From positions 10,008,254-10,072,253 of the forward strand of contig NC_069000.1 in the NCBI RefSeq assembly GCF_001194135.2: DNA of 64,000 nt, given 5' to 3'. Origin of the DNA: Octopus bimaculoides. Lineage: Eukaryota. Positions within the stretch are counted from its first letter, which is position 1, and each line of letters begins with the position of its first letter. Positions 8,930 through 62,950 of the stretch are shown here, piece by piece. The notes beneath the pieces were generated by a model, which had not been told where the DNA came from, did no database searches, and saw nothing but the letters and a program-made list of their open reading frames with translations. A program made the position numbers and the translations under genes.

Positions 8930-9325
8930 TGTATGTGATAGTAAGTGAAAACATGCATGCATGCGTGCGTGCGTGTGTGTAGTCAGGCGCACCATCAACA
9001 AGACATGAGACGGAAGACAAATTGGCAATGACATTTTGGCTGAATGAGAGAAGAGAAACAGGTAATGAAATGTAAGTTGACCCACCTGCAAAATGCGCAT
9101 TTGGCTAACGAGAAGTTCAGATGCATTATCGAACATAAACATCCGATTGGTGTCTATTCCTTGATTTACGATAGTTTTGACTCTTTGGAACATGCCCTTG
9201 CCTTTTGCTTCCCCACAGTCAGAATATATGTTGATCATCGACTCCTGCAACACACACGCACACCACAGTAGTAAGTAGAGTACAAAAACTAGAAAGATTT
9301 TTACCAAACAGATTAAGGTTTAAAA

Positions 9326-10725: not shown

Positions 10726-10768
<43 letters not shown>

Positions 10769-18700: not shown

Positions 18701-18831
18701 ACAACAATCGATAGAAATGAAGGTTCCAAGTTTCCTACATTAGCAAAACAGGGCCAGATTCTCAATAAACCCCAAAACTGGCAGATGTTTTAAGCACAAA
18801 CACCAATATGCAGCATGAAATTCAATAGATT

Positions 18832-18866
<35 letters not shown>

Positions 18867-19301
18867 CATAATAATAACAACAATCCTTTCTATTATAGGC
18901 ACGAGGCCTGAAATTTTGGGGGAGGGGGTTAGTTGATTACACCAACCTCAGTGCTCGATTGGTACTTATTCTATCGGTCTCTTTTGTCGAACCGCTAATG
19001 TTACAGTGACGTTAACACACCAGCATCGGTTGCCAAGCGATGTTGGGAGGACAAACACAGACACACACACACACACACACATANNNNNNNNNNNNNNNNN
19101 NNNNNNNNNNNNNNNNNNNNNNNNNNNNNNNNNNNNNNNNNNNNNNNNNNNNNNNNNNNNNNNNNNNNNNNNNNNNNNNNNNNNNNNNNNNNNNNNNNNN
19201 NNNNNNNNNNNNNNNNNNNNNNNNNNNNNNNNNNNNNNNNNNNNNNNNNNNNNNNNNNNNNNNNNNNNNNNNNNNNNNNNNNNNNNNNNNNNNNNNNNNN
19301 N

Positions 19302-43400: not shown

Positions 43401-46400
43401 ATGAAATTATCCATAGAACACTCTGATATATACACTCATTGTAGGCACTGGTATTACAATAATTTTTTAATGAGATAGTGCAAATTGCTAGCCAAACCCA
43501 TGATACAGGTTTCAATTCCACTTAACACATTAACTGCTGTGGCCTGTTACTAGGACTTACCACATATTTCAGATCACAATGCATACTGTTTAATTACAAG
43601 GAAATGTAGTATTTTTTTTTTTGCCTTTTTATAATATTTCATAATTAAACTTTAATATTTAGCATTCATGTTACTTAAATATCCTGGAAATCACATCAAA
43701 GATATAGAATAAAATATTTTCTCAAATTATGAAAATGTACCACTGGTGGGGGGCATATGGCAGTCACATGAAGTTTGCAATGAACCACTGGTGGTACATG
43801 CGGCAGTTAAAGTGTTAGTCAAAAGCCTGGAGAGAAATGAGCTCTGTTGGAACATTGTCTATGGCACAGAGCACACAAAGATAAAATGTTGTGACTGAGT
43901 AATCCAATGCTATATTCATTTGAGAGTAACTACACAATTTTCTGAGAAAATTGGATAGAATCTGAAGTGAGTTAGTTTCAAAAGACAAAGACTTACCTGA
44001 TTATCTCTGAAGATGTTAGGATGTCAGATTTAGTGCAGATAAAGGCTATGCTTCCATACTGACCATCCATCATTAACTGACGCCGAAAACTTTCTCCCAG
44101 CAGGTCTTTTGCAGTACGGTCATCGACAGCACGATGAATACTGGACACCACCCACACAGCGTTGCAATTTTTCAGATACTGCATAGTAATAACAACAACA
44201 ACAATAAATGATGATGAAGATAACAACAATAATAATGATTTCAAATTTTGGCACTTGGCCAGCAATTTCAGGGAGGAGAGTAAGTCGATTGCATTGACCC
44301 CAGTACGCAACTGGTACTTGTTTTATTGACCCCCAGAAGGATGTAAGGCAAAGTCAAACCTAGCGGAAGTTGAACTCAGAACGTAAGGACAAACGAAATG
44401 CCGATAAGCATTTCAGCCAGCTCGCCACTTTAATAATAATCATTCCTAATATAGGCATAAAGGCCTGAAATTGATTACATTGACCCCAGTGTTTAACTGG
44501 TACTTAATTTATTGACCCCAAAAGGATGAAAGGCAAAGTCGACCTTGGCAGAATTTGAACACAGAACATGAACGAAATATCGCTAAGCATTTCATCAGGC
44601 ATGCTAACGATTCTACCAGCTCACTGCCTTAATAATAATAATAATAATGAGGAGGAGGAGGAGGAGGGGAGGAGAATGGTTTCAGATTTTGGCACAAAGC
44701 CAGTAATTATAAGGGGCAGGGGGTAGTTGATTACACTGAAACCCCACTTTCAGCCGTGATCAAAAGTTACTTATTTTATTGACCCAGAAAGGATGAAAAG
44801 TAATGTCAATTTCAGGAGAAATTTGAATTCAGCATATAAAGGGCTGGAAGAAATACCACTAGGCATTTTGTCTGATGTACTGCTAATTATGCCAGCTGGT
44901 GCCTTAAGAATAACAGTAGTAACAGCTGGTGTTATTTTCATTGTTACTTACTTCTTTAGCGATTTTATCACGAGCAGCATTTGAATCCCTGACTCCAGGT
45001 AAATCAACAAGGATGGCTCCACTGCTGAGTACATCACTGTTAGGTATGTAGATCTTGACATTCTTGACCACTGGCCAGTACTGATTGCCAGTACCTTTGT
45101 CTGAAGACTCAATGTAATGGTCAATATAGGATTTGAACTCCTCAGCCTGCAAAGCAAATAAAACAAAACCCGTTTTAATCAAGGATAACAGATGTTTTAG
45201 AAAACCTACCCTTTCAAGAACTTACCAAAATCCTTTAAGTCTTAACCACACAATATATTTCATGACAATTAACTATAAAATACATTTTTGTATACCAACT
45301 TTGAGCACCTTTAGTTTTACGATACAAAACTTATTATTTTAAGCCTTTGGCATTCAAGCCAGCCATACCCAGCTCAAATATTCTACCTGTTTTATTTTAA
45401 AACTTGCCAGATTCAGCCTCTCACACCTATCCAACCATGCCATTCTAAAAGTAAACAATAACAATTGTATTATTATTTACTTTTGCTGTAAAAGGAATTA
45501 TCACAACGTTTTCACTATCATAATTCTTTGCTTTATGTTCAGCTAACTGGACTGTTATCTTGCTTTTTATATACAATAATGTCTTCTGCTTTCGTTATGG
45601 CACTTTTGTAACATATTACATTGCACTGCTGGACTGCTTTAAGTATTACATGCTTTTTGATGTGTGAAAGCATTTTTGCCTGAATGTGCACTGCTGAAAC
45701 CAGGGTGTACCAAATATACTCATGCATCTTCTGTGCTTCCAAATATGGTAGTTATTTAGCTAAATCCCTTCAAATTCTTGATTATTCTCAAAATTAAACT
45801 TAATGGTATTTCATTAGAAACAGAGCAATGGAAGGGTTGAAGAGATGATTTGAATTGTTGTTTGTTGTAATTTGCTAAATTTACAAAGAAGAAATCTAAC
45901 CTTCGATGCCTTGATATGTTTGGTTTTGCCAAGCCATGATGTGACTGATGTTGATGTCTTTTTCAAAACATCAATTGTTGAAACTTTACCGTAGACAGCT
46001 TTGATTTTGCTAAATGCCACACCTGTCTCTGACTTGGGGTCAAGATTGCGACTGGAGAAATGAATCTTGCCATCGGAGGACTGGAGATCGCCAAACAGAA
46101 TTTCTAGTTCGTCGTTCCATTCCTAAAAAAAAACAGGAGAGAAAGAGGATATAGTATGGGGAATGTTTTATAAAACTCATATTAATACATTCATAGAATA
46201 TACGCTAATACAGATATAAAAAATAAAAAAATCAACACACATCTGTCTACAGATATGCCCATGCAAGAATTTACATCAACTGCACATTCACAGAAAACAT
46301 GCACACATATGCACACTCGCTAAAAGCATACTGGAATATTTGTATGTGTATATATGTATATATGTGCAAGCATGAATGTCCTTACACTCTCATATCTCTC

Positions 46401-46900: not shown

Positions 46901-49778
46901 GATATATATAAGTATAAACAAATTCAAAAATATCCCGTCATATACTCTCAAACACTTTCATGTTACTGATGCCCCATTCTAACTTGAGTACACACACACA
47001 CACACAACCTGTAATAATAACTAGCTACAAAACGGGAGGAAATGATTATTAACAGATAATTGGAGCAGTGAGCATGTTTGGTTGGGTTGCAATGAGTCCA
47101 TGTTGTAGACACATACAACCAAACGAAACCAAACCGAACATGGAAATGTGAACAAGAATGAAATATTACATTAGACACCATAACATGAACTCTACCAACA
47201 ACGCTTAATGTTGTTTGTGTAAACTAGGTGATCTGATCTGATTGGACTAAAATCGGAAAAAAAAGACAATGTTTGGATAAATAAACAACATAAACAGGCT
47301 CCATATTGAAACAAGGTTTCCAGCATAAGCAAACAATCATTGTTTACAAAACACAACACACGTTCTCTTTAATGTTTGTATGTGCAAGTGTTTGTTGTTG
47401 TGGTGGTGGTGGTGGTGGTGGTGGTGGTGGTAATTATCATCATCATTATTATTATTATTATTATTGTCATTATTATTATTGTTGTTATTTAAATACAAGC
47501 AAACATACATCAAAACAAACAGTAAAGTTTGAAATTTGGAACAAAGCATTGAAATCAATAATCTTTCCAATCATAATCACACAAAGGCTTGCAGAACCAA
47601 TCACAGGATTCTAAAAACTAATTTACCGAATATATTCTCCACAGAATTCCCACCACACACACACACTCTCTCTCTCTCTCTCCACCATCATCCCACTGCA
47701 CTGTATCACATTCCACCCCACTCCTCCCGCTACATCATCTCCCAGAACTGTGTACCTGAATGAAATTATTACACGCCACAGCCATTAATTAAAACAAACC
47801 GTTTTTCTCCTCTTGAAAGAATCATTTCTCTACAGAATTACTTACCTCAAGAGATAGGAAATCAATATCGGCCTCGTAGCAGTTGGTGCGCAGGTTTTGC
47901 TGCACTTCAACTACTACTGCAGTGCATGCTCTCATGCCCGACGTCGGCAGAATGTTCCCGTGATCCAACAAAGCGTTCAGCAAGCTGGATTTGCCGGCGC
48001 CCGTGTCACCAACCACAGCAATAACTGTCCGCGGAAGTTTCAATTTTTTGTTCAGTTCATTGAGTTCTTCACTAAAATATGGGAGAAAAAGGTATGATAA
48101 AAAAAAAAAAAGCAAAAGAAAAAAGTAGAGTATAAGATAGAGGATGAGTGAATGGGAGAGAGAGTGGGGGTAGCAGATTGGGGGGGGGGGNNNNNNNNNN
48201 NNNNNNNNNNNNNNNNNNNNNNNNNNNNNNNNNNNNNNNNNNNNNNNNNNNNNNNNNNNNGGAACACATGCACAACAGAATATCCTTTTATTCTTTTACT
48301 TGTTTCAGTCATTTGACTGTGGTCACGCTAGAGCACCGCCTTTAGTCAAGCAAATCGACCCCAGAACTTATTTTTTGTAAGCCTAGTACTTATTCTATCG
48401 GTCTCTTTTGGCAAACCGCTAAGATACGGGGACGTAAACACACCATCATCGGATGTCAAGTGATGTTGGGGGGATAAACACAGACTCACAAACATACATA
48501 CACACACATGATGGGCTTCTTTCAGTTTCCATCTATCATATCCACTCACAAGGCTTTGGTCGGTCCGAGGCTATAGTAGAAAATGGGGCAACTGCTCATA
48601 CCACAAGAGAAACAATGCAGTGGCAGTGCTTTGGAGAGAGAATAATCTCCCACTACGCAATGTCAACTGGCCTTCACATTCCCCAGACTTGACTAGCCTG
48701 GATTTTTTCTTGTGTGTATGTGTGTGTTTATTTGTATCCAACAAATGAAGTGTAAACTCACATGTTGATATTTTGAGGGAAGTTGGTTACATCAACCTTA
48801 GTGCTCAACTGCCACTTTATTTTATCAACTCGAAAGGGTAAAAGGCAACATGAACTTCAGAAGATAAAGAACTGGAAGAAATGCCGTTAAGCATTTTGAC
48901 CAGTGTGGTAGCAATAATAACAATTGTAGCAATACTCACAGCCATTTTCGTACTCGATGTAAATTTTTCAAATCCTCCCGATTATCAAGAACTTTCCGGA
49001 TATTCTGTACAATTTCTGAACACCTGAAATGGACCAAATAAATTTGATAAGTAACACTGAATTTTATGAGAAATTGTCATTTCTAGATATAAATGTAATT
49101 TGCTCAACTGGGAATTGAACCTGTACTGCTAACACAACTTACTAATTGAATGTTTAACCTTTGACCCTTTGGATAGAGAACTTTGAAGGCTGCCTGTGGG
49201 ATGCAAACCCACATCTTCTGTAAACAAGACAAACGTCAGCAATATATAAATATACATACAATGCGTTTCCGTCTACCAAATCCACTCACAAGACTTTGGT
49301 TGGCCCAGGGTTATGGTACAAAATGCTATGCAGTGAGATTGAACCAAAAACCAATTGGGTGAGAAGCAAGCTTCTTGACCACATAACCACACCAGCACTT
49401 TTTTGGTTGTTTATTACAAATATATTTTTATTTACTTCATTCCCAATTAACACATTTTACTGACCTGCACTGTTACCTACTTGTGATGACCTCTTCTGTT
49501 TGCTATTTGCTTTTAAATAATTAGGTTATCTCAGACCATTGACCTGAGATAAGTCATTCAAATTATTTTTGTTTGTGACTTATTCTTTTATTTGTTTCAG
49601 TCATTTGACTGCGGCCATGCTGGAGCACCACCTTTTAGTCGAACAAATTGACCCCAGAACTTATTCTTTGTAAGGCAAGTACTTATCCTATCGGTTACTT
49701 TTTGCCGAACCGCTAAGTTATGGGGGACTAGAGAAAGAATCCAACACATATATGCATAGATACATACATACATATACA

Positions 49779-49815
<37 letters not shown>

Positions 49816-52800
49816 ACGTGTGTGTATCTATGTGAGTGTGTATGTTTATGCATCTGTTACTTTTCAACATGATTAGTCCACATTACTCAAAAAGGAGCAT
49901 AGGGCTGCAGTTTCTCTGGTGTATATATTCCTCCCCTGGATGGGATGCCAGTGCATTGCAGGAATGCTCATTTTTACCAGCTGAGTGAACTGGAACAATT
50001 TGAAATGAAGTGATTTGCTCAAGAGCACAACACACTGCCCAGTCCAGCAATCAAAACCACAGTCTTACGATCATGGGCCCAACGCCCTAACCACTAAGCC
50101 ATATGAAAATATAAAAATGCAACAATGAATTTGTATAGAATTTTGACTTTTGACTTCTTTGTGCAGGAATTTTAATGTTATAGACCAGATTCAAAATGAA
50201 GATATACAAAGACAGACAAAAATTTTAAAAAATTGGGATACATACTTTGGTATTTGGCTTGCTTCTTCATCAAGGAGCTTTTGACAAGCTTGTGAAGATG
50301 CTGTCAATTCATCTTCTGGAATGTCTTCTGCATTTTGGTTGTCGTCTTTCGTTTCCATTTCAGGAGGGGACACTGGAACTGTCTTTTTAATCTTTAAATA
50401 CTTTCGCTTCTCTCTTAATTTCTCCAGAAGAGAACGTGCCTTGTCTTTGTCAACTTTTGGTAGTTTCATTGTCTTCTTGCTCATGCCATCCTGAAGATCA
50501 GACTGGCTAGACTCGTCAAAGTGATGTGTTGCGTGGGTACTTGACAAATTACTTGGACTGGAAGAGCCACACGTGTCTGCGGGCTGGTCTTGTTCGTCAG
50601 TTTTTAATTTCTTTGATGAGGAAGCATTTGCAGCTGCCATCGCAGCCTTCCTCTTCCTGATACTGAGCAATTTCTCAGAAATGCGTTGTCTTGCTGGTGA
50701 AATCGTGTCAGTTTTGGAAGCTTTCGTGTTGCTATTGCTTTTGTTATTGTCATTGTTGTCTTTCTCCGATTCCTTTGACAATTCTTTGTCATTACTAGAC
50801 TTCGATTCATTGTTCACTTCATCTGTCTTCTTCTCTTTATTGCCATCACCATCATTGTCAATATCATTGTCATCATCATCATCATCAACATCGTCATCGA
50901 GGTCTTTTAATTTAGTAGACAGTCCCTCTTCAGTATCCTTTTCACTAAAATTTAGGGAGTCTACATCATCTTCATCACCAAATTCCTCGTTAGAAATATC
51001 ATCTTCGTCTTCATCAAAATCTTCTATATCTCCATCTTCGAAGTTATCATTGTCTATATCTTCTTCCTCGTTAACATCCTTTTGTTCAGGTGCTGCCTCA
51101 GAGGAATTACTCTGTGTGAAGACATTCTCCACACGGCTGCTCTCTTCTTCTGCTTGACTCGTTGATGCTGAAGAATTTGCAGGATCAGTAATGGCAGCAG
51201 CAACAGTAGAAGTAGCTGGAGTGCTAGACGAAGAGGTAGATGAAGTAGAAGTGACTGAGGTGGATGCCTGTGAATTATGTTCTTTCGTTGCTGTATGACT
51301 TGAGACATGTGTTGATGATGGCTGCTCAGGAAGTGGTGAAACAAAGACACGATTTTGCTCACTTCCAGTGGAACCGGCAACAGCAGAGTCATAACCAGGA
51401 TCCGACTCTTTCTCAACTTTTATACTGGTCTTGATATCTTTGAAAGTTGTGGATACCCAGTTGTCATTTTCCTGCTCGACATTCAAGTTTGGGTTCTCGG
51501 CAGGTGTCGATGATGGCTCGGGTAAGTAAAACACAATCTCTTTTTTGATATTTTCCTCTAACAAACCAGCTTTCATCGGTCCTTGGTCTTGCCGCCAGTC
51601 TTGTGACGCTACATTATTTCCTTGAGGTATTTGCTCACTTTTGAAAACCATCGAATTACTCTGCGATCCGTTTGTTTCAGTTGAATGCTTTGCATCTTTG
51701 GAGGCAGAATCCATAGAACCTTTTGAATCTACATGCAAACTGTGCTCAGAAGACTGTGGCATATAATATGGAGAGTTGGGGCTATAAAAGTTTGACTCTG
51801 TTTTCACGTTTTCTATTAATTTTTCTTTTACAGAATTGGATTCCCAATTTTGTTTAAGATCTTCATTTGATTGTAACTCTCGTTCCTGTTTCAAAACCAA
51901 TAACTCCCCATCGAGAGTTTTAGGGAGACTTTCACTTCCCTTAGAACAGGGATCAACAGGCGTAGAACTTTTTGATTCCCCTAATGTAGCATCGCTGTTC
52001 GTAGTGTGGGAATCTGGGTCATCTGGCAATGGAGTTATATTGGGACTGAGCAAGAGTTCTTCATCTTCGGTGTTTTCAAGGCTTTTATTTAAATCAACAC
52101 CATCATCATTCAACAGCATATCATCATCAGTTTCATAATCCGTTAAATCACTTTTAACACTGGCCTTAAGCTTAGCATCAGGAGATTCGACTTTGGTCAC
52201 ATGCTGGGGTAGCTTCGTTACAGACGATGTATCTAAAGAAATGAATCAATAAAAGAGATTAGTATATCACTGCCATTATTGTAACTATCATCATTACTAC
52301 TTCTACCAGCATCATTATCATGGATGCGAGTAGTATTATTATTTATAGAATTTTAAAATAAATTCCATCAATTCATAATAAAACAAACGGAAGTTTCTTA
52401 ACATATGCTAGGATAAAATTAACAACTAGAGATAATTTTCAGTAATATAATGATGAGATTTTCATAAGGGCTAAAATAATGTGTATATGGAAGTGAAACC
52501 AAAACTATTTATAAATACAATGGGATACATCTATCAAACAAATTTAAGTAAAGACAAAAATAATGGGAAGGAAGTTCTAAATACGTGTGTGTGTGCATGC
52601 ATGCATGTGGTGTACATGTATATGTATGCACACAAACATGCAAGATTCAACAAGAAGGGAGTGGGGGAAGAGTACTTAATGCTGAATGTAGAGTATTATG
52701 TTTAATGAAACCAAAACTTGTAGGTTCAAAGTTTTCAGTTCTCTGCTCCTCAGATAAAACATGAGGGGATCAAGAAATATGTTATTTTGATTATAGGAAA

Positions 52801-55240
52801 AACTAGGACAATAAGAGTTTTTTTTACTGGGTAACAATTGAAAAGAAGATAAAAATAATGGCAAAAATAGTTTTAGAAGGTTAAAAATAAAGAAAATAAA
52901 ACTTTAATGATAAGAGATAAAACAATAACAAAATATGAGATAAAGATGAATAACAGTTGTAACTATCAAAGGGTTTGAGAAGAGGAGGAGAAGGAAAGAG
53001 TTTTTTGTTTCATTTTTCTTTATATTTCATATTTTACAGGTGCAGTCATTGCTTAAGAATTGTATGTTAAAGCTGAAAGACAAACTGTTATGATTAGAAA
53101 GGGGTTCATGGAATGGTATGTATTATTTACGACATGTGCACACAAGTAAATATGTTCACGCATATACACACATTTGTAAAGAGAGGTGTATAGATGTATA
53201 GACACGACTAAGGCAAACAGAGGTGACATAACAACAACAATAATAATAAATGTCAAGATGGAAACGTTGAAAAATGAGTAAACAACTAGTCTCAGCTGCA
53301 AGATTTACAGTCTTATGAGATCGCACTGCAAGGGAGTGAAAATATGTAAAATCTCAAAGTGAAAGAAACATATTCGTCCTTCTTACGTCTGTTTTTCCAC
53401 GGTCGCATGGGTTGGATGAATACAGATTACTGAGGCACGGTTTTATAGTTGAATACCCTCTCTGTTGTTAGCCCTTTACTTCAAAAAGAAGCAAAGGATA
53501 TTTTCCTTTTTTATTCTACTTGTCTTTGAAAGTGCAGAGGTAGAGAATGCTTTGTTGATAAAAGCATCAACAAATATCTTCAGTTTTAGTTTAATGCTTC
53601 CATGCAAAGATGTAGCATTTACGCATGTGCACACATGCACACACACACACACATACATATATATCAGTTACAAGGATCCATAAAGAATCAACATGAAGCA
53701 TGCCGCTAATTGTGTAGACAAAATCACACAGAGCAGAGAGTAAAGTAATTCGTTATCAGTGCAGAAGGCATTGATGAAGTTAAGACACTGCTGTTGGGTA
53801 ATCTGCAATTCTAATAGAAAAAAAAAACTATTCAACAAAGAATAAAATAAATAGTGTGACATAAATAAGACAATACAAACAGATGGATTTCCGAGTGTTG
53901 CTATGACTGTTTTTGTTAGGGGTTTCTATTTTGATGTCAATATAAATACAGGTATGGAAGCTAACAGATTATGCAATACACTATGCAACTTCTCAAAACA
54001 GAATGGAGTTTGGGAGTTGCACAGTGTATTTATTGCATAACTTGTAGAACTATATTATGCTTATCGTCATCATTTAACGTCCGCTTTCCATGCTAGCATG
54101 GGTTGGACAATTTGACTGAGGACTGGCAAGCCAGCAGGCTCCAATCGGATCTGGCAGAGTTTCTACAGCTGGATGCCCTTCCTAACGCCAACCACTCAGA
54201 GAGTGCAGTGGGTGCTTTTACGTGCCACCGGCACGAGGGCCAGTCACACAGTACTGACAACGGTCACGCGCTAAAAGGTGTTTGTTACGTGCCACCTGTA
54301 CAAGAGCCAGTCCAGCAGCACTGGCAACGATCTCGCTCGAATGATTTTCTAACGTGCCACCAGTACAAGTGCTAGAAGGCGACGCTGGTAATGATTATGC
54401 TCAAATGGTGCTATTTACGGGCCACTAGCATGGAAGCCAGAGGGTTGTCTGCCAACGAACATGCTCGGACAGTGCTGTTAGTGCTCCACTGGCGCAGGTG
54501 CCAATCATCGAGTATGGTTCAATTACGATTTCTATTTGACTTGCCCCAACAGGTCTTCGCAACGAAACAACTGTAGCAACAACCAGAAATCCATTTGTTT
54601 GTTTTTCTTTTATTCTACACACACACACGTTCATATATATATATATGATGGGCCTCCATCAATTCAACTGTCTACATTATAGACACCAATACACACACAG
54701 TCTCTTATTATTGAGTACCAACTAATTTGGGGACTGTTTGACTTCTACTTGGTCAACTTGTTTGCAGACATGATTTGTGTCATAGCAAGCATTATATTTA
54801 TTTGGATTATATTCATATATTTATATTCCAAAACTGGCTTTTTAGAACAACATACTACTGGTCTAAAATATTAGTTCCTTTCTTTTTCTTCTTTTCTTTC
54901 TTAACATGTTTCAGTTTTACTAATAGCGTTTCATGATATGAATGGTTGCAGAAACAAACATGTTTATTACAAGAGAACAACGAGATAAAAATATACACAT
55001 TCTCTTTATATGATAAATCAGTCATTCTTTCTCTTTTATTTTTTTTTCATATAAGACTTTATGTCAAAGCTTTGAGAAAATTTATAATTATATACAATTA
55101 TTCATTGAAGCCTTTCAGCGAATAATATTGTTTTGGACAAGTTGAGGGGGGTACTCTATGGAGTGCATGCGAGTTTTGTTGCCACTTCATGCATACGTAA
55201 ATATGTATGTATGTGTATATGTATGTATATGTGTGGTATG

Positions 55241-55282
<42 letters not shown>

Positions 55283-58200
55283 TGTGTGTGGTCATGTGTT
55301 TATATATGTGTGTGTGCATGTGTGTGTATGTGTATGTATGTGTGTATGTTTTTATACACACACACACTCACTCACATACACAGACATATAATTAACATGA
55401 CTCTTAGTTTTAAATTAAAAAGCTCCAAATGAAATTAGTGAAGCACTAGCATAGTATAAATAAAGACATTAGAGAATTAAGAGTGAGATACCCGAGGGTA
55501 TGTTGTTTGGTACTGCACTGAAAGGAGTGAATGTTGGACAGAAAAAACAAAAAAAACAACTTGATATCCAATTAATTAAATAAGTGCAAGTCCAATCAAC
55601 AGAGGTAAATGAAACAGAACACAGTAAACAATTCAAAATAATGGAAAATTACAATTACAAATAATACAAGTATAAACATCCATACCCATCGGATATTTCC
55701 GTCAACAAAGACAATTGCAGGAAGTTATAAAAGGACATGAAACAAGAGTGCTGTAGAAATAACTGCAATATGTTTGTTTATTGCTTCAATAAAATGGGTG
55801 ACAGAGAGAGAGAGAGAGAGAGAGAAAAAAGCAGATGGGCAGACAGACAAAAAGAAGAGCAAGGGCCATTGAATGCTGAGTTTGAACAAACAACTCCAGT
55901 TCAGGGGACAACATAGAAAATGGCAGAGTTAAAAAAAAAAAATAATAAAATAAAATAAACAAACCTGAAGACCTTATTTGGAGATACTCCGATAATTCAT
56001 GCAAATGTAAGAGTTTGTAAACCCATATTGTCAGAACAGAAAATATGAGAAAAAAAAAAAAACAAAAAAAAAAACACCTACAGAAACAAATGAAACACTT
56101 ACCTAAATTTGAAGGGTCTCGGGAAACATCTTGTTCCAGTATAGGTAAAGATGCAGTTGATTGACTTTCAGACTTTGTGTCATCGAGAAAAGCGTGCTTA
56201 TCATCAGGAGGTCGGTCGTTCTCTCTCTCTGCGGAAGCCGTTGCCGTTGTCACACCAGATGAAATGCATGCATACTGTGTCTGTGAGTCAGTGTATGTGT
56301 CTGAAGAACTGTTGGTATCAGGGTTAGCACAAGAAAGATCATTCTCTTCTTTGATAGTGTGTTTAGTGTCTGGCTCGGATTTCTCCAGCTTCACGTGTAC
56401 CTGCTGATCGCCAGATTCCATTGGTGCATCAACAATGAGATCATGCTTCCAGTCATTACTAGAGTTTGTTGACGATGCACTATGAGAATCTGGCATGGCC
56501 ACCACTACGGAACTTGTAGTAGAAGCTCCTTCTACTACTTGTGACCTGTGAGATGTGGTGGAGCTATCGTTATTGTTATTGTTGTTGTTATTGTTGGCTG
56601 TTGTGTTTGTGTTGTTAGTGTTGTTTGTGGGTGAGTTTTGTACAGTGGTTTCATTGTGTTGTGTTCTAACGGAGGGATGTGTAAATATGGGAGGTGATGG
56701 AGACAAGGTGGTTAGATGTGGTGGTGGTTTTATTATTGTGTTTGGATGAGAATTACCTACAAATGAAGGCATCGCTTTGTCGATGCCAGTTGAGCCAACA
56801 ATTTGTTGTACGTCAGAAGTATCCATTGGACGGCAACTCTGTGATATCATAGACTCTAACGTAGATGCAGCATGAGGTTTAGAAAGTGACAGCTGATGCT
56901 CTGACACCGTTGTATCTGCCTCAACTCGTACGTCCGCTGATGAAGGGACCACACTGGGTTCGGCTGTTGGGACTACTTCTTCGATGCGGCATGTCGAAGC
57001 TACACCACTCTGACTGTCATCCGCAATAGCCACCAAGTTGTGGTCACCAACAAGACCTGCCTTGGAGACAAGTTTATTGTCCATGCCAATTTTGAACTCA
57101 AATTTGGTGACTAAACTTAACTCACTAGAATTGTCCGAGTTCATATTACAAGACACGCGCTGAGAAAAGCCAGACACAGGGGTGATATTTGGATTTTTTA
57201 TATGGAAGGTCCCTTCCATCACTTTTGGTGAGTTGGAAATGTTTACAGAAACATTTGCTTCATCACAGACCTTTTTCTGGGAGGGCTGTTGGTTTGGTGG
57301 AGAAAGCTCAAGCTTTCGTTTGCTGAGCTGGCTGATGTCCACATAACTGGGTTGGCTCAGCAAGGTAGCCGAAGGATTGTTGGTCCCTAGTAAACTATCT
57401 ATAGCAACTGGAATGTTGACATCTTTATGTAATCCACCAGCATGGCCGTCAGCAGGTATAATCCTGGTCACTGGCTGCTGCCGGTTGTCCAAATTAAATA
57501 AATGGTGTTGATCAACGTTGGATGAAATGGCATCTTCAGAGTCTTTTATTTTAACTGTCTGACCATAGTGAGTCCGCACAAAGGTTTCATGAGGATGGCT
57601 TGTTGCTTCGATGGATCGTTGGTTGTGTAAATGAGAGTCGCTTTGTGGGGAGCGGTGGTCAGGTTGAATCGTGTCATCATCGTCGATGATAATGTGAACT
57701 TGTGAAGTGCTGTTGTCAACACTTTGGTCAGGCAGCATGGGCCGAATGCCACTGATCAGAGGGTTTTTGGGGAAAGAGCAACTTACCTGATGATAGTCAT
57801 ATTCTTTTTTGGGGACAATATTTGTACATTCAATGACATCTGTATTTTCTGGCTGCGAACTCTCAACAATCATACTACTACTACTATTACCACTATTACT
57901 TCTGTCGTAAGTCCGAGGGTTCTCAATGACAGATTTATATGCTCGGTCCTTATCTCTGTTATTTCGGCGAGGCACATTACACCGAAACGGTGAATCAGAC
58001 TGCTTGATGTCAATAATTTCAATGTCTGGGTCAGTCTGGTCACTACACGAGGGGTTAGAATGGGGTTGCAGCGGTTTTCGAGAAATATCAGCAGTAGAAA
58101 AACTACAGTTTTTGGTAGAAGACGACGTGGAACTAGGGTATCGACCGAGATCTTCTAGTTCTCGAAGAGTATTAGCCTCAATGCGGTCTAGAGCAGCTAG

Positions 58201-58542
58201 ACCCGATTCTGGTTCATTGTTTGAGTTCTTCACATTCATTCTGTCTTTGTATGAAGGATACATGGAATCTGGTGACTTTTCATATGTGATTTTAGATGAA
58301 AGTTTCTCAGCAGAATCATAACGCATGTTTTTCAAAGGACTTCTTCGATTTGAGCCAGAGTCAATCTCAGCCTGGTCACTGACTTGGTTTTCAGTTTCGC
58401 AAGAGTCCTGCAAATGAAGAAGAAACAATATGAAATTATAAACCAGCAAGGGAATTATTCAATTTGAGTGAATGTAAAGAACAAACGAAATGCTGCTAAG
58501 CATTTTGCCTGGCATGCTTACAATTTTGACTGCTCAGTACCT

Positions 58543-58574
<32 letters not shown>

Positions 58575-59861
58575 ACAGCAACAACAACAATAGAGCAAAA
58601 CCAATTTCAGACAAATTTACTTTTATATCTTTTTACATCTATAAATTCATTGGTGGCAATAAATTTCCAATGGGTAAGTCACTGGTTTATTGCAATTGTG
58701 ATGGTGAGTGTGACAAGCAGATATCTGTGCAACTCAAGCAGAATACCACAAAAGGTAATTTGTTTGATGAAGGTTTGTGGCTTAATGGTTGGGATGTTGC
58801 AGCTTCAATACCTGGAGCAAACAGTGTGTTGGGTTCTTAAGCAAAACGTTTCATTTCCCTTCACTCCAGTTCACTCAACTACGAATGAGTATGATATAGC
58901 TGAACGCCTCAATGCTGTAGATCAGGGATCTGTATAAGATTTTGGGGGGTCCTCACAAGCAAAGTAGTAAATTAGGGATTCACAGTAATATTTTAAGGGC
59001 TCATGAAAATTTTTTGCATTAGATGTATTTATTGCAAGAAACAGCTAGGTTTCATTCTCTGAGATTTTACATATGTTAGGGTGCCGGGTGAAATGCTTAG
59101 CGGTATTTCATCTGTCTTTACGTTCTGAGTTCAAATTCTGCTAAGGTCAACTTTGCCTTTCAATCTTTCGGGGTCGATTAAATAAGTACCAGTTACGCAC
59201 TGGGGTCAATGTAATCAACTTAATCCCTTTGTCTGTCCTTGTTTGTCCCCTCTATGTTTAGCCCCCTGTGGGCAATAAAGAAATAAAATATGCTTCCAGC
59301 CACTGAAACATATTCTTTCAAAAAGTGTTATTAGAAATTCACACAAGTGGAAGTGTGAAAAACGGTGTAGGAATTTTGAAAGAAATATCTATAAAATTAC
59401 TTTTTAATCCTTTAGTATTCGGATTATTCTGCCAAAATTTAATGCTTATTTATTCAAATTGTCTTGAATTAATCATGCATTATCTTGCCGCTTCAAGATT
59501 TTGATGATGTGATTGTTCATTCATAGAATACCTTTATAGGGTAGGCGTGAAAGGCTGGAACTGGCTGATTTGGACGTTAAACAGGTAGAATATTTTGGCA
59601 GGTCATGGTCAGTTTAAATGCTAATAAATAAACATCAGATGGCTAGGGGAGGAGGGGGTCCATCAGAATAAAATGGTAACCAAAGAGGTCCATAAATAAA
59701 ATAAAAAAAAGGGGTTGACAACCACTACTGTAAATGGTAAAACTTACCAAAGTTGTGGTATCAGAAACTGATGAGTTCTGATTCTGTACAGGCTCTTCAC
59801 ATACATCTCTCGGGGTCGTACTGCTGCATTCTACAATGGAGGTTTCTTCACATGGTAATCT
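259..59861 (-). CDS. NUGGC: Multi-exon gene (19 exons in window, partial at both ends): NUGGC/SLIP-GC-like dynamin-superfamily nuclear GTPase with very long disordered N-terminal extension, 2,375 codons in window
   Basis: Exons in transcript order: 59861-59748, 58407-56103, 52232-50246, 49023-48940, 48071-47846, 46122-45901, 45146-44952, 44178-43997, 43103-42890, 41886-41770, 41288-41169, 40407-40105, 39174-39016, 38263-38063, 36487-36318, 32379-32220, 29073-28990, 9244-9086, 382-259. All introns are GT-AG and phases match at all 18 junctions. Family motifs recognised: [142 protein letters not shown]. Confidence 0.9.
627..854 (-). mobile_element. tRNA-derived SINE (family A, Meta-domain-like core) with perfect target-site duplication
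   Basis: On the minus strand: A-box-like TGGCAGAAATGTTAGC, B-box GAGTTCAAATTCC, core CTTTGCCTTTCATCCTTTCGGGGTCGATTAAATAAG. Flanked by CCTTATCTAAGTGT at 613-626 and 853-866. Confidence 0.85.
1740..2140 (+). mobile_element. tRNA-derived SINE (family B, CORE-like, internal (TA)/(TG) linker)
   Basis: Head GGCACAGGCATAGCCATGTGG...GGGTTCAGTCCC, then TTGGGGCAAGT...CTACTATAGCCTC and the shared 3' body. Many related copies occur in the window. Confidence 0.8.
5176..5400 (+). mobile_element. tRNA-derived SINE (family D, V/Nin-like core)
   Basis: GGCACATGGCTTAGTGGTCAAGGC head, GTTTTGATTCCC B-box, CCAGTCCACTCAGCTGGCAAAAATGAGT and GACCAGCATCCCATCCAGG core. Related copies at ~16877-17160(+), 26822-27036(-), 39273-39520(+), 49890-50102(-), 58775-58915(+). 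Confidence 0.7.
6400..6570. repeat. (GA)n grading into degenerate (GAGT)n/(GGAGT)n purine-rich repeat
   Basis: Directly visible. Confidence 0.8.
7740..8086. other. Assembly gap (representative). Others at about 3930-3991, 10769-11016, 11572-11687, 14355-14638, 19084-19301, 26401-26572, 27893-28049, 33994-34003, 48191-48260, 60989-61122
   Basis: Runs of N, mostly flanked by (TA)n/(CA)n, and one by poly-G. Confidence 0.98.
8088..8398 (+). mobile_element. Family B SINE, 3' part next to an assembly gap
   Basis: Close to the family consensus: CTACTATAGCCTCGGGCCGACCAAGGCCTTGTGAGTGGATTTGGTAGAC...GGCGGTGCTCCAGCATGGCTGCAGTCAAATGACTGAAACAAGTAAAAGAG. Confidence 0.85.
9086..9244 (-). CDS. NUGGC: Exon 18, [53 protein letters not shown]
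   Basis: CAG acceptor, GTGGGT donor, phase 0/0; Y-x7-GxGxFxRxK...MFxxA family block. Preceded by a 19.7-kb intron. Confidence 0.9.
9630..10155. mobile_element. Foldback/MITE-like element with ~230-bp imperfect inverted arms and a 62-bp spacer
   Basis: Left arm 9630-9859 is the reverse complement of right arm 9922-10155 (e.g. AACAGCTGTTTCTGGG / CCCAGAAACAGCTGTT). TA lies at both outer ends. Confidence 0.85.
11148..11390 (-). mobile_element. SINE family C (RTE-like 3' tail)
   Basis: Shares TTCTACAGCTGGATGCCCTTCCTAACGCCAACCACT with copies at 23650-23848(+), 36590-36752(+), 38450-38660(-), 54063-54570(-) and 60069-60240(-). Plus-strand copies end in ACCCATGCTAGCATGGAAAGCGGA...TTAAA(TGA)n. Confidence 0.75.
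12325..12870 (-). mobile_element. Unclassified ~550-bp dispersed repeat ending in an (AAT)n tail
   Basis: Its 3' end recurs at 37545-37607(+) (CATGATGGGTATACTGGGCTTTG..TATTTTGCCCCAGTGTCACTTTGATGG), and both copies are followed by AAT/TAA repeats. Confidence 0.55.
15508..15950 (-). mobile_element. Family B SINE, near full length
   Basis: Same modules as 1740-2140 in reverse. Other minus-strand copies at ~13460-13997, 33815-34195, 36760-37050, 46437-46820, 48288-48583, 49585-49730, 61165-61510. Confidence 0.8.
19676..19983. mobile_element. 308-bp MITE-like foldback with a perfect 20-bp terminal inverted repeat
   Basis: ATGCAGACCAAATTAATCTA (19676-19695) / TAGATTAATTTGGTCTGCAT (19964-19983); subterminal CTCCCTGT/ACAGGGAG; pyrimidine-rich left half and purine-rich right half. 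Confidence 0.75.
20177..20440. mobile_element. hAT-like non-autonomous element
   Basis: Ends CAATGGTTCTCAAC / ATTGAGAAGCACTG resemble CAGTGGTTCTCAAC-type hAT TIRs. The 8-bp flanks match only 5/8. Related internal sequence at ~58925-59080. Confidence 0.55.
21442..21661. mobile_element. piggyBac-type MITE (220 bp) with TTAA target-site duplication
   Basis: TTAA|CCCTTTAG ... CTAAAGGG|TTAA (TTAA at 21438-21441 and 21662-21665). Decayed relatives at ~45340-45445 and ~59403-59622. Confidence 0.85.
22456..22932. repeat. Three tandem copies of a 167-bp unit (third copy carries a ~20-bp deletion)
   Basis: Unit starts at 22456, 22623 and 22790. Shared motifs: ACATTATCTAAT..GTCCTTCTTT, GATGTAATTTGGCTGCTGTTTCTAGC, ACCACAAACAGGC, AGAGTGGATCA. 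Confidence 0.75.
24356..24800 (+). mobile_element. Family B SINE head plus a second module, with microsatellite linker
   Basis: GGCACAAGTATAGCTGTGTGGTTAAGAAGGCTGCTTCCCAACCACGTGGTTTTGGGTTCAGTCCC head. Confidence 0.65.
25807..26081 (+). mobile_element. 5'-truncated non-LTR retrotransposon remnant, C-terminus of a restriction-like endonuclease (RLE; NeSL/R4/CRE-type) ORF, pseudogenised
   Basis: CPADISL / frameshift / [82 protein letters not shown]. This matches the CP...K..K...Y...PI..GALG...LQ....GT.KI pattern of RLE elements. Confidence 0.75.
28990..29073 (-). CDS. NUGGC: Exon 17, [28 protein letters not shown]
   Basis: TTTTACAG acceptor, GTAAGT donor, phase 0/0; QREISR motif. Confidence 0.92.
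29455..29835 (+). mobile_element. tRNA-derived SINE, long family D-related variant
   Basis: GGCCCAGTGGTTAGAGCAGCAGACTC...GGTTTCGATTCCCAGACTGGG tRNA-like head, followed by a non-tRNA body partly shared with 16877-17160. Confidence 0.75.
31597..32085. repeat. Decayed ~10-bp minisatellite (consensus ~TACAATATAGA / TACAACATAGA)
   Basis: Recurrent ACAATATAG, ACAACATAG and GCAATATAG words over ~490 bp with strong A skew. Confidence 0.6.
32220..32379 (-). CDS. NUGGC: Exon 16, [21 protein letters not shown]...LMASLHTK
   Basis: CAG acceptor, GTAAGC donor, phase 2/0, helical pattern. Confidence 0.87.
32573..32779 (-). mobile_element. Family A SINE
   Basis: Highly similar to 627-854 with an internal deletion. 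Other copies at ~21775-21915(+), 34250-34465(-), 38703-38885(-), 48770-48905(-), 59083-59286(+). Confidence 0.8.
36318..36487 (-). CDS. NUGGC: Exon 15, [56 protein letters not shown](G)
   Basis: Not in the ORF track. T-run CAG acceptor, GTAAGA donor, phase 0/2; contains the conserved GLHxxTYxAxVRRxG...DFNExLxEP C-terminal block. Confidence 0.95.
37638..38022 (+). mobile_element. 5'-truncated R4/Dong-like non-LTR retrotransposon inserted in a (TAA)n microsatellite
   Basis: 62 intact codons [62 protein letters not shown] (stop 37824-37826), ~200-bp 3' UTR, (TAA)n on both sides (37608-37637, 38023-38046). Confidence 0.8.
38063..38263 (-). CDS. NUGGC: Exon 14, [12 protein letters not shown]...TAAKWCSP (helical stalk)
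   Basis: CAG acceptor, GTGAGC donor, 201 nt, phase 0/0. Confidence 0.9.
39016..39174 (-). CDS. NUGGC: Exon 13, [53 protein letters not shown]
   Basis: AAG acceptor, GTAAAT donor, phase 0/0; S-x-IP-x-L motif closing the G domain. Confidence 0.92.
40105..40407 (-). CDS. NUGGC: Exon 12, acidic/poly-Asn loop followed by [15 protein letters not shown]...DGPAQ
   Basis: TAG acceptor after a long T tract, GTAAGT donor, 303 nt, phase 0/0; VFCVSS (G5 region) motif; 23 consecutive Asn codons. Confidence 0.92.
40216..40284 (-). repeat. Coding (AAC/AAT)23 microsatellite, poly-Asn
   Basis: 69 bp of AAC/AAT codons inside exon 12. Confidence 0.9.
41169..41288 (-). CDS. NUGGC: Exon 11, [40 protein letters not shown]
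   Basis: CAG acceptor, GTAAGT donor, phase 0/0; RNEYSK...DFxAG family motif. Confidence 0.93.
41770..41886 (-). CDS. NUGGC: Exon 10, [39 protein letters not shown]
   Basis: TTCTAG acceptor, GTAATT donor, 117 nt open, phase 0/0, coiled-coil composition. Confidence 0.88.
42890..43103 (-). CDS. NUGGC: Exon 9, coiled-coil insertion (SLELEESF...EESESSE)
   Basis: CAG acceptor, GTATGT donor, 214 nt, phase 2/0, heptad-like E/K/L/I/A-rich sequence. Confidence 0.9.
43997..44178 (-). CDS. NUGGC: Exon 8, G4 motif TKSD (44034-44023)
   Basis: [60 protein letters not shown](R); CAG acceptor, GTAAGT donor, phase 0/2. Confidence 0.96.
44239..44900 (-). mobile_element. Three head-to-tail family A SINE copies separated by (AAT)n, filling intron 7
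   Basis: Copies at ~44239-44428, 44450-44628 and 44683-44900, each with TTGACCCC.AAAGGATG.AAGGCAAAGTC..CCT.GC.GAA.TTGAAC.CAG. Confidence 0.75.
44952..45146 (-). CDS. NUGGC: Exon 7, G3 motif DLPG (45005-44994)
   Basis: [65 protein letters not shown]; CAG acceptor, GTAAGT donor, phase 0/0. Confidence 0.96.
45901..46122 (-). CDS. NUGGC: Exon 6, [14 protein letters not shown]...[12 protein letters not shown]
   Basis: T-run TAG acceptor, GTTAGA donor, 222 nt open, phase 0/0. EWxxELxxL follows FLS-x-E as expected for the family. Confidence 0.92.
47846..48071 (-). CDS. NUGGC: Exon 5, P-loop G1 (GDTGAGKS, 48010-47987) and G2 (RACTA)
   Basis: [75 protein letters not shown]; TAG acceptor, GTAAGT donor, phase 2/0. 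Confidence 0.96.
48940..49023 (-). CDS. NUGGC: Exon 4, (K)[27 protein letters not shown](L), helix preceding the G domain
   Basis: TTTCAG acceptor, GTGAGT donor, 84 nt, phase 2/2. Confidence 0.88.
50246..52232 (-). CDS. NUGGC: Exon 3, 1,987-nt acidic/low-complexity exon ([10 protein letters not shown]...EASQIP)
   Basis: 661 uninterrupted internal codons (ORF 50191-52200 extends upstream to a TTTCTTTAG acceptor at 52233-52235). GTATGT donor at 50245-50240, phase 1/2, joins in frame to exon 4. Confidence 0.88.
53668..53810 (-). CDS. Candidate alternative terminal exon encoding [47 protein letters not shown]-stop (hydrophobic tail)
   Basis: T10-CTATTAG acceptor (53811-53827), phase 1 matching the exon 2 donor, TAA at 53670-53668, AATAAA on the minus strand at 53515-53510. 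No transcript evidence is available here. Confidence 0.4.
54063..54570 (-). mobile_element. Long family C SINE with internally repeated TTTACGTGCCACC modules
   Basis: Complete 3' tail CATCATTTAACGTCCGCTTTCCATGCTAGCATGGGTT; about four diverged ACGTGCCAC repeats between 54216 and 54430. Confidence 0.7.
56103..58407 (-). CDS. NUGGC: Exon 2, 2,305-nt low-complexity S/D/N/P-rich exon (DSCETENQ...RDPSNL)
   Basis: 768 uninterrupted codons in AT-rich DNA (ORF 55786-58449). CAG acceptor at 58408-58410, GTAAGT donor at 56102-56097, phase 0/1. Coding status is strong; membership of the GTPase gene is inferred from phase. Confidence 0.8.
59748..59861 (-). CDS. NUGGC: Exon 1 (in-window numbering), [38 protein letters not shown]
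   Basis: Polypyrimidine tract plus CAG acceptor (59862-59864), GTAAGT donor (59747-59742), 114 nt open, phase 0/0, S/T/E-rich like the next exon. No ATG, so further exons should lie upstream. Confidence 0.6.
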
Positions 59862-60039: not shown

Positions 60040-60094
60040 AGATTGGAGCCTGGTGTAGCCTTCTGGTTCAGAAGGCTACACCAGGCTCCAATCT
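60040..60094. repeat. Perfect 26-bp inverted repeat with a 3-nt spacer
   Basis: AGATTGGAGCCTGGTGTAGCCTTCTG-GTT-CAGAAGGCTACACCAGGCTCCAATCT. Confidence 0.92.
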
Positions 60095-62950
60095 GATTTG
60101 GCAGAGTTTCTACAGCTGGATGCCCTTCCTAACGCCAACCACTCTGAGAGTGTAGTGGGTGCTTTTACGTGCCACCCGCACGAAGGCCAGTCAGGCGATA
60201 CTGGCAACGGCCACACTCAAAATGGTGTATTTTACATGAGCCTGAACAAAAAGACAGGACATTCATGACTGGAATGTCTTTGATCTCAGGTCAATGGAGG
60301 CTGAACTGATATTAAACAACAACTTTTTGAAAACCGATAAAGTTGCTGGTATTGTTGCTGTCCGTTTATTACTAACACACAAGTGTGATATGGCAACAGT
60401 ATCAAATATCATATGTTATTATCATTATTGTTGTTGCTACTGTTTTTCATATGATGAGTGTGGCAGAAGTAATCACATAGGTTACCAGCTAACGACTGAG
60501 AAATGAAATGAAATGGAATATGGCTTTGGTATGAATCAACAGAAGATTAATAGATACTTCGTTAATAGGATATCAGCTGGTAGTTCAGAAAATAATGATG
60601 GGAGAAAGAGAAAATAAAAAGACTGACTTTTTCCAAAGACAGGATGAGAAAACAATATTTAGTATAAAAACAAAGAAAGAAAAGACAAAAAAAAACCAAC
60701 TTTGTATAATAAACACTTGTTTGTGACATTCTAAGTGTGACATTGTTGTATTATAAAATTGGTAGTTCCATCATCAACATCACCACTACCACTATGAGTA
60801 TCAGCATCACTTATCACTACAACTAGCGCCACCAACATCATCCACTGCTAGCATCAGTATCATTATCAACACCATCACTATACACATTATCAAACGATAA
60901 GGAAGCCAAGAGACTAAAAGTTATGTAGTTTTTAGCTTCAACTCTGAATGTACTAAGTTCAAATCCATCTTGTTGGTATAATAAAAGTNNNNNNNNNNNN
61001 NNNNNNNNNNNNNNNNNNNNNNNNNNNNNNNNNNNNNNNNNNNNNNNNNNNNNNNNNNNNNNNNNNNNNNNNNNNNNNNNNNNNNNNNNNNNNNNNNNNN
61101 NNNNNNNNNNNNNNNNNNNNNNATTACAAGGATTTGCTGTATTAGTGCATGGCCCTGAAATGTGCAAACACAGGGTTTTAGTCGAACAAATCGACCCCAG
61201 GACTTATTATTTTAAGCCTAGTACTTATTCTATCAGTCTCTTTGCTGAACTGCTGCTATGGGGACATAAACACACCAACACTGGTTGTCAAGCGGTGATG
61301 GGGTGACAAATACAGACACAAAGACACACACACACACATATATATATGATAGGCTTCTTTCAGTTTCCATCTACCAAATCCACTCACAAGGCTTTTGTCA
61401 GCCTGAGGCTATAGTAGAAGACATTCGCCCAAGGTGCCACATAGCAAGACTGAACCCAAGACCATGTGGTTGGGAAGCAAGCTTCTTATCACACAGCTAC
61501 GCCTGTGCCTCCAAATATTTTAATTTGAGAGCAAATATGGGAGACAACTGTGAACATGTTTCTGGCTTATTCAGTCCCACTGCTTGGCACCTTGAGCAAA
61601 TATCCTCTTCTATAGTTCTAAGATGACTAAATCCATATGGGGAAATATGGATAGAAGGAAACTAAAAATAAAAAAAAAATGGCTTTCTTTATAAGTGTGT
61701 GTCTCCTTGTTTTGTCATCATGTGCTAATTGTAAAAAATACTTCCCCATCATACAGTGATATTTCTTTCTAGTCTTCTGTGAAAAGGTATTTGGACCAGG
61801 GAGGAAAATATTACCTTGCTTTTGAAATAGGTGACAGTTAGCAACAGAAAGAGCATGCAGCCATATAAATTCTGCTCCCACAAATATCATCTGATCCATG
61901 CAAGAGAGAGAAGTGTAAAGTATGATGATGATGACTGTCTTACATGATGCAAATTGCTGCAAACAAAGCCTTGCTCTTTTAACTTACTTAAAATTCCTCT
62001 TAAAAGTTCAAGGCTTCCTTTGGGTTTAATCACAATACTTACTTATTCTACACACACATAATGGCAGTATTTCATACCTATTCAAAGCTGACAGGTATTA
62101 TGATTAAACAGAAAGAGAGCTTTCAGCTTTGTACAAGGAAATAAGGCAGTACTTGAGCAAGTCTTTTGTCTCAGAAAGTTGCAGCACTGACGAAGAATAT
62201 TTTTAACTTTTATCGTTCAAACAAGCTGGATATAGACACCATAAACACAGTATTATTTATTCAAACACAACTGTATCTTAACTGATTAACACGTTAGCTG
62301 AATTAAAGCTAACATATTTAATGAGAGATCGATAAAAAGCTAACTAAAACTAGTAAGATTATAATTCTTTAGAATTATGAAGAGTTATAATCTTACTGTT
62401 CACCTCATCTTTGGAAATGAAATATTAAAAAAAAATATTTTACATGTACAGTGCATCTCTATTAAGTTTCAACTCTGATTGTAATTGGGTGTCTTATTCA
62501 TGAATGTAATACAAGTGGGTGAGAGTTATCATGAGTTTAAGGATAAAGAATTTTAGATTGAATCCAGTGTAGTGCTATATAGAAATTCAAGAACAAGCGA
62601 GCCAATGGCGATTGAAAGTAGCAAAAGAAAACCAAACGGAACATTGTAGATATTAAAAAAAGGGTTGCACCTCCAACAATGAGTTTAGTAAATTTGAAAA
62701 CTTATAGTTATATCAACTCAGATATCTTTAATTTTTTATTTGTTTCAGTCAGTGAGTTGTGGTCATGCTGGGGCACAGCCATCATTGGTTTAAGTCAAAC
62801 AAATCAACTCTGGTGCCTAAGTTTTGTATAGGTCTGGTACATAGTCAACTGATCCCTTCTACTGAACTACTAAGTTAGAAGGACATAAATAAACCAACAC
62901 CAGTTATCAAATGGTAGTAGGGGATACACACACACACACACACACACATA

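Follow-up and report, generated by a model that had tools for sequence, protein, structure and literature searches.

The 64-kb window analysed here (64,000 nucleotides of Octopus bimaculoides contig NC_069000.1; all coordinates are positions in this window) carries the exons of a SLIP-GC/NUGGC-type GTPase, every one of them on the minus strand. The best overall explanation is probably that of one minus-strand gene, in which a small exon and two giant ones encode an N-terminal extension of at least 1,468 residues ahead of the GTPase. To judge by comparison with the genomic sequence of a distant relative, exons 1–3, which code for the extension, are very probably part of the same gene as the GTPase, and there is a good probability that this single gene has a lineage-restricted, disordered head. 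The window itself is AT-rich DNA with assembly gaps and abundant microsatellites.

Exon structure and the case for one gene

Exon 1 (59748..59861) is 114 nucleotides (nt) long, begins and ends in phase 0 between an AG acceptor and a GTAAGT donor, and has no in-frame ATG. The giant exon 2 (56103..58407) is 2,305 nt long, comprises 768 codons of disordered sequence with conserved islands, and leaves in phase 1. The second giant exon, exon 3 (50246..52232), is 1,987 nt long, is entered in phase 1 and left in phase 2, and encodes an acidic tract, clusters resembling nuclear localisation signals (NLS) and a conserved helical C-terminal segment just before the GTPase. Upstream of each of exons 1–3 is a polypyrimidine tract with AG, and downstream is GTAAGT or GTATGT. 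The joined exons have no stop codon in 1,468 codons, while the other two frames contain 65 and 175 stops; an open frame of this length is far beyond chance at about 40% GC. Exon 4 (48940..49023, 84 nt, without ATG) is the first exon homologous to bivalve SLIP-GC-like proteins. Both exon 4 (49023-48940) and the P-loop exon after it (48071-47846) continue the frame of exon 3 in phase; 5' of exon 4, its frame closes 54 nt from the acceptor.

An earlier note, made from the sequence of the window, had described three extension exons of 114, 2,305 and 1,987 nt in phases 0, 1 and 2, and their coordinates, splice sites, phases and open frame were all reproduced. Its claim that they join the GTPase exons in phase agrees with the predicted chain of 14 phase-consistent exons running from 49023 to 28990. 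These exons, obtained with bivalve proteins in tblastn followed by phase-constrained splice-site chaining, measure 84–303 nt each, as had been said of the exons surrounding the two giant ones, and they have good splice sites and encode 813 amino acids (aa). The traced protein thus has 1,468 + 813 = 2,281 aa down to position 28990. The proposed minimum of 1,468 aa for the extension stands, and the total of 2,375 aa given for the protein was not reached, as the chain stops short of the 3' end. Below 28990 a codon-usage scan was uninformative, and two exon-like open reading frames (ORFs) had no match in Pfam. One short, TAA-terminated frame on the minus strand at 27099-27191, past the last modelled exon, is a possible terminal exon without Pfam match. 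An exon-like frame at 2-374 of the same strand follows a good acceptor (TTATTGCAG), also without Pfam match, and could be a distal 3' exon or the next gene.

The main comparisons were with L001, a 99-kb ENA contig of a distant relative, and L002, a second species represented by 5-kb Logan contigs. In L001, exons 1, 2, 3 and 4 were placed by tblastx with order and strand unchanged, at 9097-9228, 10016-12689, 17542-19159 and 19654-19737, respectively. Their lengths are 132, 2,674, 1,618 and 84 nt versus 114, 2,305, 1,987 and 84 nt in the window, and the residues modulo 3 are identical: exon 1 keeps identical boundaries and a multiple of three, exons 2 and 3 are both 1 modulo 3, and the orthologous acceptor of exon 3 likewise lies 2 bases ahead of the codon boundary. 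All eight splice sites compared in exons 1–4 are orthologous, and the joined frame is open in L001 too. Synonymous sites between the two sequences are saturated (proportion of synonymous differences, pS, 0.74), and 54% of aligned amino acids are identical. Introns 1–3 and the region above exon 1 show essentially no conservation, so that the exons stand out. Since intron 2 is unconserved, there is no additional conserved exon in it to serve as the last of one gene or the first of the next. The sole conserved block of introns 1–3 is a weak, AT-rich match of 38 nt in intron 3, which was rejected as an alternative first exon because of its weakness, its composition and its non-conserved ATG.

An in-frame ATG is absent from exon 1, and the first one in the modelled coding sequence, MRYD, is in exon 2. 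It belongs to a block of 10 aa (58297..58326) that is invariant in all relatives, and coding conservation continues upstream of it. Differences between the window and L001 at the first, second and third codon positions number 10/5/18 in exon 1, 11/9/19 in exon 2 before its first Met, and 13/9/22 in exon 3 before its first Met; the third-position bias is thus present in all segments, including those upstream of every candidate ATG. As exon 1 is coding and has no in-frame ATG, at least one further coding exon should be located upstream. This agrees with the earlier note, which had found no start codon. When 4.1 kb above exon 1 were compared by blastn and tblastx with 9.1 kb above its orthologue in L001, only microsatellite matches were obtained in the search for the start-codon exon. 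Runs of N are present at 48191-48260 (intron 4) and 60989-61122 (1.1 kb above exon 1), and the second could conceal a missing 5' exon.

Neither exon 4 nor the P-loop exon contains a Met, and translation therefore begins in exon 3 or further upstream. The fallback start suggested in the earlier note, MLLNDDG in exon 3, was rejected: its Met is Thr in L001, and conserved coding sequence with third-position bias lies 5' of it. Conversely, the first Met of L001 exon 3 is Val in the window. The 5' part of exon 3 from KLPQHV onward (52042..52215) is conserved and lies partly upstream of the first, unconserved Met of the exon. Coding-type conservation in exon 3 runs from its acceptor on, with no conserved ATG at the 5' end; exon 3 would therefore be an internal exon requiring a phase-1 donor, and exon 2 provides a conserved one.

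These observations bear directly on the alternative of two adjacent genes, in which exons 1 and 2 form a separate gene upstream that codes for a disordered protein, the GTPase gene starts on its own within exon 3 or at an unseen first exon spliced to exon 3 or 4, and the in-phase join is coincidental. Synteny by itself is no proof of co-transcription, and homologues of exon 2 do appear as stand-alone ORF calls, though these are genomic read-through ORFs and not transcripts. However, the phase-1 donor of exon 2 and the phase-1 acceptor of exon 3 are orthologous and compatible in two species despite length changes of 369 nt, and reading on past the exon 2 donor gives only about 100 hydrophobic codons, which are not conserved. 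With exon 3 coding from its acceptor on without a conserved ATG, and with no conserved block in intron 2 able to be a terminal or first exon, an arrangement of two genes is considered improbable.

Several points weigh against the model of a single long gene. The junctions 56103>52232 and 50246>49023 come from sequence comparison alone; exons 1–4 are covered by only one other genome, whose contig ends before the P-loop exon; and the start codon and the 3' end are absent from the gene model. When the exon 2 and exon 3 ORFs of the window were looked up as exact sequences in the protein database, no record was obtained, nor did its searches yield a product of the window's species. The sequences P0033 and P0034 were considered as cDNA-like evidence and discarded, as they proved to be genomic read-through ORFs.

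A further possibility, compatible with the single gene, is that of alternative 5' ends: besides the long form, a short isoform would account for much or most of the GTPase product, and the extension would be an optional module. This is regarded as a minor possibility. Such an isoform might be transcribed from a promoter, or begin with an alternative first exon, inside intron 2 or intron 3, or its translation might begin at a Met further downstream, for example the conserved one of KTMKLPKV. The start of the bivalve homologues falls approximately 85 residues before the end of exon 3, the Met of a block of 10 residues is conserved in L001, and giant 5' exons are often alternatively used. On the other side, introns 1–3 have no block conserved between the window and L001 except the weak 38-nt match, and purifying selection acts on the whole extension (see below), so the long form appears to be used.

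GTPase part and its family

The downstream exons belong to the SLIP-GC/NUGGC-type family, an assignment supported by their predicted domains in the order Dynamin_N, coiled coil, poly-Asn linker and DUF7605. The P-loop exon (47846..48071), with GDTGAGKSS at 47984-48010, is 62–66% identical to bivalve proteins in tblastx and tblastn. It is followed by a GTPase exon at 45901..46122 (tblastn and chaining), by the exon with the family signature of 13 aa at G3 (44952..45146), whose columns are nearly invariant in alignment A2, and by the exon with TKSD (G4) and RAVDD (43997..44178). Nine further exons (43103-42890, 41886-41770, 41288-41169, 40407-40105, 39174-39016, 38263-38063, 36487-36318, 32379-32220 and 29073-28990) encode the coiled coil and DUF7605, with the poly-Asn linker in 40407-40105.

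Dynamin_N (PF00350) was recognised at residues 46-269 of the spliced GTPase part with 63.1 bits against a cutoff of 27 (E 4e-17), and in PDB the GTPase part has a weak match to the bacterial dynamin-like protein 2j68. The G1 P-loop GxxxxGK[ST], G3 DxxG and G4 [NT]KxD are intact (exons 48071-47846, 45146-44952 and 44178-43997, respectively). DUF7605 (PF24564) scored 30.2 bits against a cutoff of 27 over positions 4-128 of 183 of the profile, with the poly-Asn tract removed; roughly the final third of the profile was not located. The tract, in which an AAC/AAT repeat at 40207-40290 in exon 40407-40105 codes for about 25 consecutive Asn, had masked the Pfam match to DUF7605 until it was removed. 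The same domain is common to Pecten P0032 and P0022. The residues G302, V306, D307-G310, D313, N315-R318, R340 and A341, which are nearly invariant in 30 homologues, are all present in the window protein, as are a 12-aa signature around G3 and RAVDD..TAK..LG.

The top matches are proteins of Dreissena and Mya named 'nuclear GTPase SLIP-GC-like' at NCBI (E 3e-60 to 9e-53), the names being automatic annotations. The best matches, proteins of Dreissena, Mya and Mytilus, have 53–57% identity, and the C-terminal half is colinear with the partial Pecten maximus protein P0032 at 44% identity. Family matches also include algae, fungi and protist-like metagenomic proteins, and the family is therefore broad; vertebrate sequences were not found among the matches of the word-indexed protein searches. 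The naming of the gene as a NUGGC-family GTPase thus holds at the SLIP-GC/NUGGC-type level, through Dynamin_N, DUF7605 and the matches to bivalve SLIP-GC-like proteins.

The bivalve SLIP-GC-like proteins (Dreissena polymorpha P0003, Mya arenaria P0005, Mytilus edulis P0004 and Pecten maximus P0032) share the P-loop, the G3 signature, TKxD and DUF7605 with the window protein, colinearly, with 53–57% identity in the G domain and 44% in the C-terminal half. They differ in having the P-loop at residues 84-126 and nothing that matches exons 1 and 2 or the first approximately 575 residues of exon 3. Vertebrate NUGGC/SLIP-GC, which is of the same GTPase type according to the names of the annotated relatives, has a dynamin-superfamily G domain, a coiled coil and a conserved C-terminal region. 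Human NUGGC has about 800 aa and a short N-terminus. In the window gene, the P-loop is preceded by at least 1,519 residues, and the comparison with vertebrate NUGGC was made through the broader family with Dynamin_N and DUF7605.

Selection, disorder and origin of the extension

Selection was examined in exon 2 of L001 and L002, which is 91% identical at the nt level versus 71% in the flanking introns. All six indels found in the exon are multiples of three, while those of the introns are of any length. Substitutions are distributed over the three codon positions as 47/40/157, and the ratio of nonsynonymous to synonymous substitution rates (dN/dS, Nei-Gojobori) is 0.17 for the exon as a whole, with 0.08 for its first 560 codons and 0.30 for its tail. 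By this pattern the extension is judged to be coding sequence under purifying selection, that is, a functional protein rather than an annotation artefact. The skewed composition, the trinucleotide repeats within the exons and the absence of any Pfam or PDB match could suggest that the long frames are non-coding, pseudogenic or derived from low-complexity repeats devoid of stops. Against this stand the lack of stops compared with 65 and 175 in the other frames, dN/dS values of 0.08–0.30 together with third-position bias and indels in multiples of 3 only, and the 54% amino-acid identity kept despite saturated dS; an artefact is extremely improbable.

The extension is rich in S (15.3%), D (9.7%), E (7.8%), N (7.6%), T (7.5%) and P (6.3%), as had been noticed earlier, and hydrophobic and aromatic residues make up 22%. 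With a mean scaled hydropathy of 0.39 and a net charge of 0.08, it falls on the disordered side of the Uversky line. No Pfam family was matched at E<=1, and no match was obtained among PDB sequences. In AlphaFold2, exon 2 had a mean predicted local distance difference test (pLDDT) score of 32, with a single helix at residues 69-86 (pLDDT about 50), and exon 3 a mean of 44, with isolated helices only. The disorder of the extension is thus supported by prediction, and the earlier statement that it has no recognisable folded domain is in accord with these values (pLDDT 32–44) and with the Pfam and PDB searches. A caveat is that the AlphaFold inputs were shallow, with 3 sequences and 1 sequence, so that the low pLDDT is weak evidence against small folded units.

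Among the matches listed in a protein search with the whole extension, the only relatives were genomic ORFs. An exhaustive HMMER profile search with exon 2 in 1.84 billion representative proteins matched P0002 and P0031 only, both from the same clade, and two scans of Joint Genome Institute (JGI) metagenomes gave no relatives. P0031 is an ORF of 185 residues on a 777-nt ENA contig, with two tandem degenerate copies of the exon 2 segment near EELDYQVS...SSVG. It represents a piece of the extension, paralogous or pseudogenised, at another place in that genome. The orthologues of the extension (P0001, P0002, P0033 and P0034, on the ENA contig ctg108464l and Logan contigs) agree with the window in the order and phase of exons 1–4 and in the invariant blocks. 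These orthologues of the related clade differ from the window in an amino-acid identity of only about 54%, in saturated dS, and in exon 2 longer and exon 3 shorter by 369 nt each.

The P-loop of Met-starting homologues that contain one is at residues 25-126, versus at least 1,519 in the window gene. In BLASTP, residue 1 of Mya P0005 aligns about 85 residues before the end of exon 3; the ancestral N-terminus therefore corresponds to the conserved helical end of exon 3, and approximately 1,380 residues upstream of it are additional. That the extension is restricted to the lineage, as the earlier note had proposed, is supported by these positions and by the confinement of the HMMER matches to one clade: no homologue was detectable outside it, the exhaustive search having been made with exon 2.

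With respect to origin, the suggestion had been that the extension was either added separately or evolved by expansion within exons. Change of length within exons is borne out: compared with the window, L001 has 369 nt more in exon 2 and 369 nt fewer in exon 3, and trinucleotide repeats inside the exons encode poly-N and poly-D. The poly-Asn/Thr tract of exon 2 (56566..56625), an AAC/AAT repeat detected by Tandem Repeats Finder (TRF), corresponds to a gap in the alignment; because it is absent from the relative, it is considered a local in-exon expansion, and the poly-Asn AAC repeat of exon 2 occurs in the window species only. The alignments indicate that the extension changes its length inside exons, by indels and trinucleotide-repeat expansion, while the short motifs are kept constant. 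As to separate addition, no trace of a donor gene was found, which neither supports nor refutes it. Exons 2 and 3 together have exactly 4,292 nt both in the window and in L001. A block moved across intron 2, or intron sliding, was rejected as the cause: the tail of L001 exon 2 and the additional exon 3 block of the window gave a Smith-Waterman z of 0.14, hence there is no homology between them, and the equal sum looks coincidental.

A dispersed repeat of about 180 bp resembling short interspersed nuclear elements (SINEs) is present in the introns and above the gene. At least eight copies, 71–94% identical and in both orientations, were located at 60041-60260, 54132-54291, 11193-11372, 23632-23771, 36587-36675, 11490-11567, 4872-4980 and 38474-38516. 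In L001, ORFs for an RVT_1 reverse transcriptase of a retroelement are located in the orthologous intron 4 right after exon 4 (20089-21745).

Conserved blocks and a putative nuclear role

About a dozen short blocks of the extension are strongly conserved and have been kept across saturated divergence. A block of 21 aa (58138..58200) is invariant in alignment A1 and forms the sole predicted helix of exon 2. Three blocks resembling SUMO-interacting motifs (SIMs) are invariant, and their assignment as SIMs is putative. Among them are a block of 16 aa at 57985..58032, with a hydrophobic core and an acidic/Ser flank, invariant in 3/3 sequences, and a second one, IIIDDDDT, at 57670..57693. The longest conserved island, of 77 aa (57061..57291), keeps 75% identity in spite of saturated dS, without any fold being predicted for it (pLDDT about 28). 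Exon 3 contains a D/E-rich acidic tract (50842..51069) that includes poly-D encoded by a GAT repeat, and an acidic tract occurs in L001 too. Closer to the GTPase, a basic segment resembling a bipartite NLS and ending in SSSKKLK (50602..50691) has 15 conserved aa and a predicted helix at 512-534. The most conserved part of exon 3 (50248..50475) is 85% identical to L001, with predicted helices of pLDDT 75–80, and matches the bivalve homologue colinearly at the N-terminus of the latter. The best helix predicted in exon 3 spans 16 aa.

From the NLS-like clusters, the SIM-like blocks, the excess of psiKxE sites and the acidic tract, it is tentatively proposed that the extension is a multivalent tail for nuclear targeting and interaction. 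The extension would be a flexible tail with no folded domain of its own. Its NLS-like basic clusters may carry the protein into the nucleus, where the SIM-like blocks and psiKxE sites would tie it to SUMO-rich nuclear bodies or chromatin and the acidic tract could be a binding site for basic partners, histones for example. In this way the GTPase would be concentrated at SUMO-rich sites. Seven psiKxE sites were counted in the window protein versus 1.4 expected (p about 0.0005), and four versus 1.5 in L001, with two of them conserved in position. The excess in L001 is marginal (p 0.06), and matches to a SIM-core regular expression are not enriched, with 8 found versus 10.4 expected from shuffled sequences. 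Both results weaken the proposed link to SUMO, which draws on the three invariant blocks and the psiKxE counts. From the motifs, a nuclear scaffold role may be inferred.

Hydrophobic cores with acidic/Ser runs, psiKxE sites, acidic tracts and NLS-like clusters are features of the disordered regions of PIAS, DAXX, RNF4 and SLX4. The likeness of the window extension to such nuclear-body proteins rich in SIM and SUMO sites is a functional analogy only, as the extension has no sequence homology to known domains or structures. According to PMC12107551, which cites Richter et al. 2009 and 2012, mammalian SLIP-GC is nuclear with a speckled pattern and supports genome stability in B cells. A nuclear tail would fit, by analogy, both this pattern and this role.

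A literature search for invertebrate SLIP-GC yielded no paper. SLIP-GC/NUGGC-type GTPases are widespread in eukaryotes and, to our knowledge, nearly unstudied beyond mouse B cells. Long disordered extensions are common in animal proteins. The present finding concerns gene structure in one clade, seen in genomic sequence. For annotation, there is a risk that gene finders could report this gene as two, or take a non-conserved Met for its start.

It is speculated, with a low probability, that the extension is a clade-specific, apparently cephalopod invention, through which an ancient and poorly understood nuclear dynamin-like GTPase has become a SUMO-dependent organiser of nuclear bodies: a multivalent tail of 1,400 residues with SIM and SUMO sites would drive association with condensates or chromatin, and the GTPase would supply nucleotide-regulated assembly. 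If true, this would be a GTP-switchable nuclear scaffold without counterpart in vertebrate NUGGC. The three SIM-like blocks, the 77-residue island and the acidic tract beside the NLS-like clusters offer handles on where and with what the GTPase may work. In its conserved, motif-studded disordered head of about 1,470 residues, the gene would show how an old enzyme gained a lineage-specific targeting module.

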